A stretch of DNA of 64,000 nucleotides from Pecten maximus (taxonomy: Eukaryota), in assembly GCF_902652985.1 (NCBI RefSeq), contig NC_047020.1:7254001-7318000 (forward strand), written 5' to 3'. The position numbers and the translations under genes were made by a program. The notes under the pieces are model-generated. The model did not search any database and was not told where the DNA came from. It was given only the letters and a program-made list of their open reading frames with translations. Below, one piece after another: positions 1,648-10,174 of the stretch. Positions within the stretch are counted from its first letter, which is position 1. The number at the start of each line of letters is the position of its first letter.

Positions 1648-2468
1648 TGAGGGTCGGTCCCCGTGATTTGTGTACGCCGCACCCGGTCCCGGACCCGATC
1701 CCCGTACCAGGAATATACATATTTTTTTTTTCTCAACAACGGCTCAATGAATAAATCTCATTTTTTTTTAATAAATTCATATTATTATTTTCAAAATCTA
1801 ACATTTTAAATGAAATGGAAGTAATACCTACAACTTTAGTAATCGTCGATTTACATTTTTCAGAGTGTGATTTTGTGTACGCCGCACTCAACCGTGAAAA
1901 GTTACGGTTTTTGGCTGTTTATTCGTAAATAAAGATTTACTTTTATGATATTTTCGATTCCATACATTAAGTAAACCTAGTTGTTGATACAAATATAAGT
2001 TTTAATTACACAAACTACTTATTTCATTTCAAATCTTGCCCTTTTTTTAGATCGCGGCGATGATCACGGGGGTTTTTGTTTACGCCCGGTCCCGTACCAA
2101 GGGCAGACTACTCCCGATCCACCGCCCCGTGCTAAGACTACTGGTTTATGAGTAGCGTGTATTGTCTAATACCAGATGTTTATATATTACTTTTATTCTA
2201 GATACATTAATTATCACTTATATCGAACGATTTTTGTGTGATGTAATATAATTTAACAAGTGAAAGATTTCGCGAAAATTACAATAGTGAAAAAGTGAGA
2301 AAAAATTAATATTGTATATACTACGAATATTTATATATATATAGTTATGCACCAAGTGCAATCTGGTATCTATACAAATACAAGCATATCAAGATCCTGA
2401 CGATGTACAGTTTCGAAAGATAGTTTGTCATCCTGATGATGTCCTAGATTTAATAAAGGGTAAGATAA

Positions 2469-2789
2469 ATGAGCGATACCGATATAGTTCCAGCACCAGA
2501 CAGTAAGATAATTAAGTTAGGCGAATCAGTACTTATGTGTTCAACACCAAGCAATACAATAGTTTCTCCTATAAAATCAGCATCAGCTTCTCTTCTCTAC
2601 GATATATCAGACATCGGTACTCCGAAAAAAACAAAACCTTGGTCGAGATTATCTTTAACACATAGGAAGTTATCAAATATCATAGAAGAGACAGAAGATC
2701 GTTCAAAAGAAGTAAGTATGAGACAGTCGGTAGAAGATACCCAAATTGATGAGCCCGTTATGAGCAATAGTCCTAATGTAGGTAGGTAG
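2469..2789 (+). CDS. Orphan 106-aa Ser/Thr-rich ORF inside the foldback element (possible cargo or remnant)
   Basis: ATG-to-TAG ORF in the non-repeated core. No recognisable motif. Confidence 0.25.
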   Translation: MSDTDIVPAPDSKIIKLGESVLMCSTPSNTIVSPIKSASASLLYDISDIGTPKKTKPWSRLSLTHRKLSNIIEETEDRSKEVSMRQSVEDTQIDEPVMSNSPNVGR

Positions 2790-2833
2790 GTTAGTTAGAT
2801 ACATAGATAGGTAGGTAGGTAGGCAGGTAGGTA
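2778..2833 (+). repeat. (TAGG/TAGA)n microsatellite
   Basis: gtaggtaggtaggttagttagatacatagataggtaggtaggtaggcaggtaggta. Confidence 0.8.
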
Positions 2834-2849
2834 AAACAAATATAGCAAT

Positions 2850-2921
2850 GGGCTCTCTGTAGAACTGCGTCCTCGTCGCAGAGCCCGGTAACATTCTTTA
2901 TATGTGGCTGAAAGTTCTACA
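2850..2921 (+). ncRNA. HDV-like (delta-like) self-cleaving ribozyme
   Basis: P1 GGGCTCT 2850-56 / AGAGCCC 2880-86; P2 TGTAGAACT 2858-66 / AGTTCTACA 2913-21; P3 GCG/CGC around L3 TCCTCGT; P1.1 CC 2871-72 / GG 2887-88; P4 TAACAT / ATGTGG; J4/2 CTGAA with the catalytic-position C at 2908. Confidence 0.85.
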
Positions 2922-4022
2922 CATATTAGATAAAGACATTTACATTCATACGACAGCTAGGTTGCCATATTATGTATCAAATGCTATAGAACATCTGGTA
3001 TATGTATACAGACAATACACGCTACTCATAAACCAGTAGTCTTAGCACGGGGCGGTGGATTGGGAGTAGTCTGCCCTTGGTACGGGACCGGGCGTAAACA
3101 AAAAAAACCCGTGATCATCGCCGCGATCTAAAAAAGGCAAGATTTGAAATGAAATAAGTAGTTTTTGTAATTAAAACTTATATTTGTATCAACAACTAGG
3201 TTTACTTAATATTTGAATAGAAAATATCATAAAAATAAACCCTTGTTTACGAATAAACAGTCAAAAACCGTAACTTTTCACGGTTGAGTGCGGCGTACAC
3301 AAACTCACACTCTGAAAAATGTAAATCGACGATTACTAAAGTTGTAGGAATTACTTCCATTTTATTTTAAATGTCAGATTTTTCAAATATTAATCAGGAT
3401 TTATAAGACAAACATGAGATTTATTCGTTGAGCCATTGTTGAGAAAAAAAATAATATGTATATTCCTGGTACGGGGATCGGGTCCGGGACCGGGTGCGGC
3501 GTACACGAAATCACGGGGACCCTGAGGGTCTTGGTAAATGTTTGAATAAAAACAATAACTGACCAGATTACAGTATGTCATCTAACTTGCAATATGTTCA
3601 CATCAATAACTTCTAACATAATCCATATTATACGTATATGGATTTAATAGAAATTAAAAGATTTTACAATAGTAACTTTAATTTAAAAGTAGACAAAACA
3701 GTTATCAACTAGATATAATCTTAAATAGGGAGATGGGAAATCGCTTCAACGCTGTTTTATCATTTCCCCATCTGCAAAATATTACATCAATGTGAATCAT
3801 CGATAGACTTGATTTGTTTACTGAAAGTATTAATTCAAATAAATAATGTCACTAAATCTATCCATATGATATAATATTAATATCCTATAGCTAGTTATGA
3901 TGTCCTCTGGTCAATTCTGGTGATTAATATGATTTTAGTACGTCCCAAAATTCTATGATCGGAATATTTTGGAATATACATACATTCTAATGTATAGCTC
4001 CGAAGTATTCCGAACTGTATCA

Positions 4023-4123: not shown

Positions 4124-6485
4124 GTAAGATAGCTCACTAATACATGATGTATCGTGTATTTTTTGTTTAACTGACAGTACAGCTGACTGTTACTGTGACA
4201 GCGGACAACCTTGGAAAGCACAACTTCTTGTTTCAGTTGCACTGAAACTTAAATATGTTCTCTCAACGCCAACACATTGTGTGACTGCGACAGACATACA
4301 CACCTATTATGGTAACAGCCAGGTGACAGCTGTGTGTTGGGTGCATGTATTGACAGTCTAATGAACAACTTTTGTGGACTACATTATATTCTGTTTTGAC
4401 ATACATTTTGTACATGTATAACTAGTCTGCATGCTTGGCTATATATCATAACTTGTATCCTCTCCATGGTACTTTTTGATAGCTAGAACTATCTCCCCTC
4501 AGATAACTTATACTCTCCAAGCTTAAGGATGCTTACTTTCTACAGTGACAGTCTTCTTTTTAGTAGGCTATTCAAATTGCTTTTCATCCAGCATCCATCT
4601 GTCCATTTTTTAACAATTCTTGTTATTACAATTCAACAGAAAAATCTTCATATTTCTCAAATATAATATGTTTCTCAGAAAGGCAAAAATTGATGATATG
4701 TGCTACACTTTGATTGATTTAGAGTACAGTGTATTTTACTTTGATTGCATTAGGCTATGGGCGGCCGTTTTAGGATAAAATACAGACACTACTTAAGTGC
4801 AAAAACTTTTGCACTTAAGTGCAAATCTTTTGCACTTAAGTGCAAAAAAATTAACATAATGGCAAAAAATTACATAATGGCAAAAACTTTTTCACTTAAG
4901 TGCAAAAACCACATAATGCAAAAAGAACTCTTTTGCCATTATGTAGTAATCTTTTTACATTATGTACCTGCGCACATAAGTACAAAAAATTTCTTCGTAT
5001 CCCTCTCTTCAAAATGGATCGTTCCAGTAATACTAGAACTCTTTAGCACTAAACAACACAAATGTTATCCTTGTCTGCGCATGTCGGGTGACCCTTAAAT
5101 ACATGTACGCCATAGGAAAATATACACCATAGGGGTTTTCGCACGCCATAGCAAAATGTTAACGATATATACACAAAATAACTTGTTTTTTTGCGTTGGT
5201 CTACCTCTTTTACAGGTTCTGATGAAGTTTCATTAAAAAAAATGTGCACTTTGTAAAAAAGTCGGTCTTATTTGCGTAGCCAGGATGAAGCGCTTTGCAC
5301 TACTATTCGGCATACGTGTTTCTGCACGCCATAGTAAAATTCAAGAGTTGTTTCTGCAAAATCAAAGGATTTTTCAAATTGTATGTGTATTATACATGAT
5401 ATAGTAAAGTTTCATTAAACAAAAATGTGTATTTTGTACGAATTTCGGTATTTTTTGTCCATCGTAATTTCAGGTCAATTCAAGGGAAGTAACTCTTACA
5501 AAGTCCTCAGAGACCATGAAACTGGACCAGAATGGGTATTAAAGGTGTTTATCGCTTATAAATTGTATTATTTCGCAGTGTTTTGATTCTATTACATATT
5601 GAAATACCTTTTTTTTTTACCAAAAATTGTTTTTAATTATGTATTTTAAAGGCATAACCCTTACATTTACAAAATGAACAAAATCAGATTGGACACTATT
5701 AAACACTTTTTATTTATAAAAAACAAAGATATTAATACAGTCCATATACTGCAACTTTGAAAACCAATCATGATTTATTGTGTTATATATTGTTATCAAT
5801 GGCAGATATATAGTTTTATATACAATAAAGTAGTACACAAAATATTTAAAGGAATTAAACATTTAAAAGGAATCGGATATTTATATTATTATATTATATA
5901 CACAAGCAGATAGATCTGAAATCAAAATATTAATATGACACAGACAAAAAATAATGATAATGGAAACAACATCAATCATAATGTTTACATTTCTAACTCA
6001 CAGCAATAAAGTTGATTGAATAATAAAATAAAATATATATGATTATCATGAAATGATTCTAATTAATAGTTATACATTTTTAAGATTAATCGCTTGAAAC
6101 ATATTATAAATTACAAAGCATAACATGACATATTAAAGATGTTTATCAATTTCAATCAATTATACAAAAATGGTCGTCTCAAAGCATGGAACTGGGTCCT
6201 GAGTCCTGAGTTGTTGAAATGCACTTGGTCACAGTCAAAGTCCTCTAGTAAGCAGTTGTTCATTTATCTTCCTCCGTTGTTTCTCAAAAGAGGTCGTTGT
6301 CAGGCCGGGGGACTTGTCAGAGTTACCACGTCGCACAATCTCTGAAAAGTACACCTTCTGAATTCCAGCGTGATGTAGGTCCACCTGCAGTGTCGGAAAT
6401 CTCTGGAACATGTAGCTGGGGATAATGTCGCCGAGATGTCATTTCCTCTTAGTTAGATGAGTACAACATCAGGGTTGTACTCTAT

Positions 6486-8308
6486 TGTTGGGAAAGTGTT
6501 AGAAAGGGTTATTTTTAAGCACTTGTATAATTATTTTTTTTGAAAATGCATTATTTTATCGGTTTCAAGCAGGATTTATGCCTGGAAATTCAGCAGTATA
6601 CCAACTAATGGAAATTTATCATAACATTTGTCTAAATCTAGAAAAAAAGAAACATACTTGTATGATTTTCTGTGACATTTCGAAAGCCTTTGACAGAGTC
6701 TGGCACAAAGGTCTCCTAATAAATGGGAAATATGGTATTTCAGGTAATCTCTTGTCCTGGATAGAAAACTATTTATGTAACAGACAACAAAAAGTATATA
6801 TTAACAGTTCATCTTCTGATGTTGGTATGATAATGGCTGGAGTTCCCCAGGGCTCAATTCTAGGACCTCTTCTTTTTTTAATATATATTAATGACATAGC
6901 TGATGAACTTGAGTCAACAGCACGTTTATTTGCTGATGACACTTCTCTTATAAAGTCGTCTTCTTCATGCCGAGAAATTGAATTAGTTTTAAACAGAGAT
7001 TTAGAAAAATTAAATCAGTGGGCAAAAACTTGGCTTGTTTCTTTTAATCCAAATAAAACTGAGATAATTTGTATATCAAACTCCGACAATATTGAAGAAA
7101 ATCTTGATTTAATTTTTGATGGAACCTTTTTAAATTTTAGTAGTTTACATAGACATCTTGGAGTCATATTTAATTCAAATGCTAAATGGTCTGACCACAT
7201 TTATGAGATATACAAATCAGTAATGAAAAAAATAAATGTTTTAAGGAAAATTAAATATATGTTTAAGCGTGATGCTCTTTTAAGAATTTATAAGTCATTT
7301 ATTTTACCTGTTCTGGAATATGCATGTGAGTTTTGGGACGGATGCTCTCAAGCTGACTCAGAAAAGTTAGAGCGGGCTCAGTTTGAAGCAGCTAGAATAA
7401 TAACTGGTCTACCATCTTATACAAGAAAAGAATTTTTATATTTTGAAACATCTTTGGAACCACTTTCAGACAGAAGAGCTAAAAGAAATCTTCAATTACT
7501 TTATAAAATAAAAAATAATATGACTCCAAGTTATCTATCTAACTTATTACATGTACCTCCTTCAGTGGGCAATAATAACCCTTACCCTTTAAGAAATAAG
7601 GACAATTTTAGAATTCCAAATTACAGACTCTCTTCTACAATAAACTCCTTCTTTCCCTCTACTTTAAGAAACTGGAACAATTTAGACGACAATGTTAAAT
7701 CTCTTTCTCTTTCTTCTTTCGAACTAGCTCTCTCTCAACCTATTTCTACTAGTCTGCCTTGCTACTATAATTATGGTGAAAGAAAGTTTAATATAATACA
7801 TACAAAATTAAGATATAAGTGTAGTTCTCTTAAGGATGATCTTTTTCGTGTAAATTTGGCAGAGGACTCTATTTGTGTAAACTGTGGTAACATTTGTGAA
7901 AATGCGCATCATTTCTTTTGTGAATGTCCAATATATGCTACTGCTCGTGCTGAAATGTTCCAATATTTTAATGATTTAAATATACATGTAAATTTAAATT
8001 TGTTATTATATGGTAATGAAAACTTGGCTTTGGAAGTGAATAGTTATGTATTTGGATATGTGCAGTCTTTCATAAAGTCCAGCAGAAGATTTTGAATATA
8101 TATACTTGTATCTCTTTATTATGTAAATGTACATTGTATGTTAGATTATCCATTTTTCCTCCTAAATGTTACATGATTTACTATATATTATACCTATGTC
8201 ATTACTTGTAAATATTAACATGTTGAGTGGAGAAGGCTTCATAAGTTGTAATAACTTGTGCCTAATCCTATTGTTCTTGTTTAGACAATAAAATATGTTT
8301 AAAGTAAA
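6486..8308 (+). mobile_element. 5'-truncated non-LTR retrotransposon (CR1/L2-type LINE)
   Basis: RT motifs. 9-bp TSD GTACTCTAT at 6477-6485 and 8309-8317. 3' stem-loop at 8234-8263, AATAAA at 8287 and an (AAAGT)2 tail. Confidence 0.92.
6578..8095 (+). CDS. LINE ORF2 C-terminal part: reverse transcriptase plus Cys/His finger (truncated)
   Basis: DISKAFDRVWH, GVPQGSILGPLLFLIYINDI, LFADDT, WLVSFNPNKT and C-terminal CVNC...HHFFCEC. Homology extends back to 6487 across a +1 slip in a T run. Confidence 0.9.
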   Translation: MPGNSAVYQLMEIYHNICLNLEKKKHTCMIFCDISKAFDRVWHKGLLINGKYGISGNLLSWIENYLCNRQQKVYINSSSSDVGMIMAGVPQGSILGPLLFLIYINDIADELESTARLFADDTSLIKSSSSCREIELVLNRDLEKLNQWAKTWLVSFNPNKTEIICISNSDNIEENLDLIFDGTFLNFSSLHRHLGVIFNSNAKWSDHIYEIYKSVMKKINVLRKIKYMFKRDALLRIYKSFILPVLEYACEFWDGCSQADSEKLERAQFEAARIITGLPSYTRKEFLYFETSLEPLSDRRAKRNLQLLYKIKNNMTPSYLSNLLHVPPSVGNNNPYPLRNKDNFRIPNYRLSSTINSFFPSTLRNWNNLDDNVKSLSLSSFELALSQPISTSLPCYYNYGERKFNIIHTKLRYKCSSLKDDLFRVNLAEDSICVNCGNICENAHHFFCECPIYATARAEMFQYFNDLNIHVNLNLLLYGNENLALEVNSYVFGYVQSFIKSSRRF

Positions 8309-8719
8309 GTACTCTATCAAGTCTCTAAGTAATTGTCTTTTGATCGAATCTGAACGCATGCCATCCTTCCCGAAGAATCTGACAGTGCCAGGAACATGCA
8401 TAAGAAACAATAGTATGAATAAATATAACATTTCCTAATAGTGGACAAGATTGGAAATTAAATTTAAATACTAACTTTGACAGTTATGATTTTTTTTTTT
8501 ATATATTACTTGCATTTTGGGAATTACTCAACAAATAGAGATTTTGATATTTTCTTTTCTAAAACACATTTGTTATCATTATTTTCCTTAAGGAAACCAT
8601 GATAATATCTCTCAAGAGGAGTAGCATAGCTGCTCCCAAATACTGCAAACTTGGCCATTGCTGAGTAATAGATGAGCATGAATTGGTATGTTTCTCTGTA
8701 GGGGGAAGGGAAAGTAGAG

Positions 8720-9026
8720 TTTTTTGCACTTAAGTGCAAAAACTTTTTTTACACTTAAGTGCAAAAAACTTTTTTTTTTTTTTTTTTACACTTAAGTGCA
8801 AAAAACTTTTTTTTACACTTAAGTGCAAAAAACTTTTTTTTACACTTAAGTGCAAAAAACTTTTTTTACACTTAAGTGCAAAAAACTTTTTTTACACTTA
8901 AGTGCAAAAAACTTTTTTTTTACACTTAAGTGCAAAAAACTTTTTTTTTTTTACACTTAAGTGCAAAAAACTTTTTTTTTTACACTTAAGTGCAAAAAAC
9001 TTTTTTTACACTTAAGTGCAAAAAAC
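8720..9026. repeat. 11 tandem copies of palindromic T(n)ACACTTAAGTGCAAAAAAC
   Basis: Counted directly. The same core occurs 4 times at each end of the host element. Confidence 0.95.
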
Positions 9027-9664
9027 TATAAATTTATCCCTAGATTATCATCCCTTTTCATTATCAGGCCTGGGCGGGGGGAGGAGGCTTTTACTTTATA
9101 TTTTTTACTAAGAATTTCCTGTAATTGTAAATATGTCTAAATTAATACATAGAAGCATGTGAAGTGTCCTTATTCCTTCACTGTTTACATTATTTTGGTC
9201 ATAAATGTTACAGGTAATCCCATTTATTATGCTACACTCCCGGAAATGTCGATATTCGCAATGACATGTGATACTCTTTGCAAAATAGGAATATTTCTTT
9301 AATCAATACTTAGGGTGTGACATAATAATTCAACCAGCACAGTTTCAAGCTCTGGTTTTCAGCTTTGCATTCAAGTCAAATGCAGTTGCATTTATTTCCA
9401 CAAAAAGTAAGTATAAATTCATAGATATTTGCGTGGTAAAGACAGTACTATGTAATATTACCATAACTTGTTACCAAACATACATGTATACTGGAAGACG
9501 TGGTCAAAGAAGGTCTACTGTAAAAAAAACCCTTCTATTATGGTTTATATTTCACATTGATCGATTGTACCATTTAAAACCAACAAAGCTTTTTCTTACA
9601 ATTGTTTCACTTCTATCAGCTGACGAGTCGCTCGGTTACAATATTTAACACGAGGTAATATAGA

Positions 9665-9790
9665 AGCCGCCATATTGTTTACGTATCGCTAGGGCACACT
9701 GCGACAGTATGCATGATTTGATTGGTCGATACGAAATTGATAGAACTTCGCCCATTGGTCGACCAATCATTGTACTTCATTTTGGACCAG
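9665..9790 (-). promoter_or_regulatory. Putative internal promoter of the TIR element (YY1-type site plus CCAAT boxes)
   Basis: gccgccatatt at ~9666-9676 with gattggtc, cattggtc and gaccaatc within 9719-9770. Orientation points toward the SGNH gene. Confidence 0.4.
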
Positions 9791-10174
9791 TCGAAAAAAT
9801 TACTTCGGTAGGTGAATTTCTTGTTGGAAACCGCTTCATTTTTTGCACTTAAGTGCAAATAATTTTTTTGACACTTAAGTGCAAATCTTTTGCACTTAAG
9901 TGTAAAAAGAACATAATGGCCATTTGGCTTTTTTTGCACTTAAGTAGTGTCTGTATTTTATCCTAAAACGGCCGCCCATATTAGGCTACAGCCTCTTACA
10001 CTTTTATTGAATTTGGGTACAGTGTGTTATACTTTGATTGAATTACTCTGCCTTAATGAAGATTATCTTCACTTGCTAAAATCTGAAGGTTTAGAATAGT
10101 AAGGCTCACCTTTTAACATCTTCACTGAAATTTTAAACTTTAATTTCCATCTTTTTATTGTAGTGTATCTTATT

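Follow-up and report, generated by a model that had tools for sequence, protein, structure and literature searches.

A 72-base stretch in a jumping gene of the king scallop Pecten maximus has every hallmark of the self-cleaving ribozymes of the hepatitis delta virus (HDV) type and appears to be a regular module of a group of Mutator-like (MULE) cut-and-paste DNA transposons, in which it lies in sense orientation just downstream of the transposase gene and just upstream of the right terminal inverted repeat (TIR). In the literature searched no paper was found that links HDV-like ribozymes to DNA transposons, TIRs or Mutator elements. The reviews consulted list only retrotransposon, viral and CPEB3 contexts (PMC4908430; PMC7761336). 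The motif is located at positions 2850-2921 of the plus strand of the window, i.e. the whole stretch of 64,000 nucleotides that was analysed (contig NC_047020.1, positions 7,254,001 to 7,318,000). The fold, its conservation, the host element and the position of the motif rest on sequence and comparative data, whereas cleavage and its consequences are inferred.

The first-pass annotation had described at this site a complete HDV-like nested double pseudoknot within the loop of a long-TIR transposon, and all of its checkable claims held. The helix P1 is formed by 2850-2856 and 2880-2886 (GGGCUCU/AGAGCCC, 7 bp, beginning with G) and is followed by the single-base J1/2 at C2857. P1 encloses the 5' strand of P2 (2858-2866), P3 (2867-2869/2877-2879) and L3 with the sequence UCCUCGU (2870-2876). 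P1.1 is composed of C2871-C2872 and G2887-G2888, P4 lies in 2889-2907 and is shortened by a 1-nt deletion in this copy, and J4/2 starts at C2908, the predicted catalytic cytosine. The predicted cut is between 2849 and 2850, and the order of the helices agrees with the published topology (PMC4908430). One refinement concerns the 3' strand of P2, which had been placed at 2913-2921. Across families, position 17 of the motif (2866) co-varies with the last J4/2 base (2912) and not with 2913 (25/25 paired, UA/CG). Hence, J4/2 (2908-2911) is better read as four bases, C-U-R-A, with A2912 paired to U2866, A2913 bulged and the remainder of P2 at 2914-2921.

A descriptor asking only for G1, a perfect 7-bp P1, a 3-bp P3, L3 UCCNCGY and the following GG hits position 2850 alone in the window and gave no hit in 300 dinucleotide shuffles. 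A loose, purely structural descriptor without the L3 sequence is not rare (4.9 hits per shuffled window), so that the weight rests on the core sequence and on the comparative data. At gathering threshold Rfam gave no hit in the window. In E-value mode, however, the site aligns in register to RF02682 (21.8 bits), the HDV-like ribozyme of Faecalibacterium prausnitzii, and to the CPEB3 ribozyme (RF00622). A sister family of the motif (family C) reaches 33.5 and 26.6 bits, respectively, which is still below the gathering scores of 44 and 35 of these models, both built from narrow families. Over the sequences scored, the range is 21.8-33.5 bits for RF02682 and 10.6-26.6 bits for CPEB3. Common to the motif and these two best Rfam matches are P1.1 GG and the GGCUAA-type J4/2, and L3 is UCCUCGU or UCCACGU against UUCACGU in CPEB3, but the host and the genomic context are unrelated.

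A DNA search of the 918-Mb genome revealed many copies, and a covariance model built from them returned 150 scored hits, which fall into at least seven sequence families. As a MAFFT alignment misplaced the J1/2 insert, 25 distinct sequences were compared in an alignment guided by the covariance model. In this alignment 95.7 % of the helix cells pair, against 32-45 % when the partners are slid. P1 is 97 % and P3 96 % paired, the P1.1 C-G pairs are present in 24-25 of the 25 sequences, and the P4 loop runs from 4 to 14 nt with its pairing kept. Five pairs show changes on both sides, namely P1 3-35 (GC/GU/AU), P1 7-31 (UA/AU), P3 18-30 (GC/AU), one P4 pair and P2 17-67 (UA/CG). The covariation score of 0.162 exceeds that of all 500 shuffles (0.115 +/- 0.007). 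P1 was not part of the structure of the model, so its support is not circular. The catalytic C is kept in 24 of the 25 sequences, the exception being one sequence with U. The pair at the cleavage site is G.U in 14 sequences and G-C in 9: families C to G have the G1.U37 wobble, whereas families A and B, including the window copy (family A), have G1-C37, which may slow cleavage. In addition, seven of the nine P2 pairs never vary, and part of the conservation may therefore reflect recent spread and not selection.

It is very unlikely that the region is not a working ribozyme and is conserved for a DNA-level reason, such as a protein-binding palindrome that only mimics the HDV fold. The sub-threshold Rfam scores and the DNA palindrome formed by the P2 arms would be compatible with this view. 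The nested minimum free energy fold of the 72-mer is likewise not unusually stable (z = -0.54), but pseudoknots are not modelled in this calculation, so that it is not informative. On the other hand, the P2 arms (GTAGAAC/GTTCTAC) are not repeated in the TIRs, the changes keep RNA pairs including G.U, the core descriptor gave no hit in shuffled sequence, and L3, P1.1 and the J4/2 C match the catalytic core of HDV and CPEB3.

The host of the window copy is a TSD-flanked element of 1.87 kb (1652-3520). Its left TIR (1652-2167, plus strand) begins with GGTC(GGTC)CCCGTGATTT and its right TIR occupies 3010-3520 on the minus strand. The inverted arms 1667-2167 and 3010-3509 show 90-99 % complementarity. 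The element is flanked by the 9-bp target-site duplication (TSD) CTGAGGGTC at 1643-1651 and 3521-3529. Two near-identical copies elsewhere carry different 9-bp TSDs, so they are separate recent insertions. A 106-aa open reading frame (2469-2789, plus strand) ends 60 nt upstream of the ribozyme, and a (GGTA)n-type microsatellite specific to family A (2781-2832) lies between the stop and the ribozyme. The left end of the element lies about 127 bp upstream of the ATG of an organic-solute-transporter/TMEM184-like gene, in the likely promoter or 5' UTR region; the first coding exon of this gene is found at 1276-1524 on the minus strand (Pfam Solute_trans_a, E 2.7e-10). Further downstream in the window, a cluster of short palindromic repeats of the type TTTTGCACTTAAGTGCAAAA (4790-4907) lies at the edge of another TIR element, placed at 4756-9980 in a first-pass annotation. 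Contigs with 0-2 differences from the window element were also found in a sequencing run labelled as a different organism, which could reflect a sister species, a mislabel or a recent transfer.

The identity of the transposon was revealed by a 4.5-kb family A element at another locus (L099), which has TIRs of 521 and 534 bp, the TSD TATAAAAAT and a longer microsatellite. Its 940-aa open frame carries the Pfam MULE domain (PF10551; E 7.8e-11, 42.7 bits against a cut-off of 27.6), a Peptidase_C48 (Ulp1) domain above cut-off, a weak PHD hit and a SWIM-like motif. As the frame lacks about 86 N-terminal residues relative to its closest foreign homologue, the element is regarded as near-full-length. 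Blocks 741-825 and 824-1107 of the window element map to its coding region. The window element is thus a non-autonomous internal-deletion derivative that has lost the MULE domain, and its 106-aa frame, in which no Pfam domain is left, is a remnant of the middle of the transposase. TSDs of 9 bp were found in eight of eight elements read, and the TIRs measure about 490-530 bp. Internal deletions of non-autonomous family A copies sometimes end inside the ribozyme: one copy lacks the first 4 nt and another the 3' third, and such copies are natural ribozyme-dead controls.

In L099 the ribozyme is located in sense 141 nt after the stop codon and 46 nt before the right TIR. Genome-wide, 34 ribozyme hits have a transposase-homologue hit 140-1230 nt upstream on the same strand. 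Family B shares with family A only the ribozyme at about 90 % identity, while its TIRs are about 70 % alike. It also has TIRs of about 490 bp, related termini and 9-bp TSDs in four of four copies, and its right TIR starts at the last bases of the ribozyme. Family D has the same layout. A 99 %-identical 1.25-kb duplication of one family D element, which contains an assembly gap (1950-2071 of its locus, L096), may be an assembly artefact. In a rearranged family C copy both arms contain an outward-facing ribozyme. A hexamer AAUAAA or AUUAAA starts within 45 nt upstream of the cut site (7-21 nt in most families) in 29 of 44 distinct contexts, against 6 % of random windows. Family A, however, has the (GGTA)n tract there instead, and its first hexamer lies about 290 nt downstream in the TIR.

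HDV-like ribozymes with the same nested double pseudoknot and a cut at the first base of P1 are known from the 5' ends of the non-LTR retrotransposons R2, RTE and L1Tc (PMC3774820; PMC3185411; PMC4908430), where the ribozyme is the first sequence of an RNA-copied element and frees its 5' end. The scallop ribozyme is not the 5' tip of a nested LINE or SINE. Only 0-120 nt separate it from the right TIR, no reverse transcriptase or endonuclease frame follows, and the sequence upstream of the cut is conserved within each family. A tail-to-head junction of tandem retroelements was rejected as well, as the A-rich or microsatellite tract belongs to the transposase 3' UTR and is present in a homologue without the ribozyme.

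The established genomic roles of HDV-like ribozymes in mobile elements are 5'-end processing (PMC4908430; PMC7761336), and in analogy the downstream product, an RNA made of the ribozyme and the right TIR, could act as a regulatory RNA or a small-RNA precursor. A motif GAGTTAY(C/T)T.CCCTT recurs 17-35 nt downstream of the ribozyme, at the inner edge of the right TIR, in families B, C, D and F, which otherwise do not align, and could be a transposase-binding site or an extension of the RNA structure. Nevertheless, such a role of the downstream RNA is improbable, since no frame or known RNA follows, no Rfam hit apart from the ribozyme was found in the elements and the distance to the TIR varies.

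The transposases of families A and C are only 33 % identical, yet their ribozymes share 82-85 % of their nucleotides, whereas TIRs are about 70 % alike (A and B) or not alignable. Seven homologue loci from other sources, including Pinctada, Mytilus edulis, M. galloprovincialis and a 75 %-identical protein on a contig that is not from this genome, lack any HDV-like motif by full covariance-model scan and by descriptor, no other pectinid genome being included in this comparison. In the 75 % homologue the A-rich tract is followed directly by TIR-like sequence. A type I hammerhead match in the M. edulis locus (4494-4537, plus strand; 33 bits, gathering 34, E 2.5e-4), inside the annotated gene range, is probably a nested hammerhead-bearing repeat and is not at the position of the scallop ribozyme. 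A pattern scan of metagenomes returned only two 'invertebrate metagenome' contigs, one about 97 % identical to family B and one matching family C, and a scan of viral contigs returned nothing. In the transposase tree, families A and B lie in one well-supported clade and family C in another, each next to ribozyme-less relatives, and monophyly of the ribozyme-bearers is rejected (AU test, p = 3e-51). The module therefore moved between co-resident MULE lineages or was lost repeatedly, and it always ended up at the same junction.

These data bear on the possibility that the ribozyme is a mere passenger, captured once, for instance from the 5' end of a LINE in the same genome, and persisting because it sits next to the cis-required subterminal region and was copied between co-resident MULEs by recombination. 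The ribozyme-less homologues show that the transposon works without it, and the largely invariant P2 and the high identity between families fit a recent common origin. However, this view is considered unlikely, because the module occupies the same junction in the same orientation in two distant MULE clades, the compensatory changes in P1, P2, P3 and P4 indicate selection on pairing after divergence, and the module is far better conserved than the adjacent TIR and UTR sequence.

The favoured explanation, held with moderate confidence, is that the ribozyme cuts sense transcripts at the boundary of the transposase frame and the TIR. An HDV-like ribozyme needs no sequence upstream of its cut, so it can define the 3' end of whatever precedes it. 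As inferred here, the RNA polymerase runs from the left end through the frame, and once the 3' strand of P2 emerges the double pseudoknot folds and cuts 5' of G2850. The upstream RNA with the left TIR, the frame and the A-rich tract would be released with a 2',3'-cyclic phosphate, while the ribozyme and the right TIR would stay on a separate 5'-OH RNA. This would give the sense transcript a defined 3' end that does not depend on, or backs up, the poly(A) machinery. It would also keep the two complementary TIRs of about 520 nt off one molecule, so that a long foldback dsRNA that could trigger silencing is not made; silencing by hairpin RNA from inverted transposon ends is probably exemplified by Mu killer and maize MuDR and by read-through dsRNA from Tc1 TIRs. 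Both ideas, blocking of read-through into the second TIR and formation of a 3' end, had been put forward in the first-pass annotation. They remain inference, but the sense orientation after the transposase stop and the poly(A) hexamer just upstream fit both. The public RNA data, contigs of uncertain type that show no ends and break at the microsatellite, were uninformative on expression and cleavage. Furthermore, the ribozyme cannot protect against antisense read-through, and after cleavage the two RNAs could still pair in trans. As an alternative, the ribozyme may cut the transposase pre-mRNA upstream of its functional poly(A) site and lower transposase output by removing the tail. The position in the 3' UTR and the lack of a hexamer between stop codon and ribozyme in family A are in line with such a negative autoregulation. 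It is nevertheless doubtful, as in the other families the hexamer is 1-15 nt before the cut site and the ribozyme there coincides with, and does not precede, the expected poly(A) site.

A more far-reaching and only tentative reading is that the ribozyme is an adaptive module of eukaryotic cut-and-paste transposons, acquired and passed between distant MULE lineages because it ends sense transcription products exactly at this boundary. This would be the first small self-cleaving ribozyme shown to serve a DNA transposon and the first natural use of an HDV-like ribozyme to make a 3' end and not a 5' end.

In cellular genomes HDV-like ribozymes are known from retrotransposon 5' ends, the CPEB3 intron and scattered loci of unknown role. 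Here the same predicted fold is a fixed part of a DNA transposon, on the 3' side of its gene, and standard Rfam annotation misses all of the approximately 150 copies. The polyphyletic spread of one 73-nt module among transposases that are only 33 % identical makes it a tidy case of modular exchange between mobile elements. If cleavage is confirmed, the biology of small ribozymes would be extended to cut-and-paste elements, with a natural example of the ribozyme as 3'-end maker used in synthetic constructs and a testable answer to how long-TIR transposons avoid making their own hairpin RNA.
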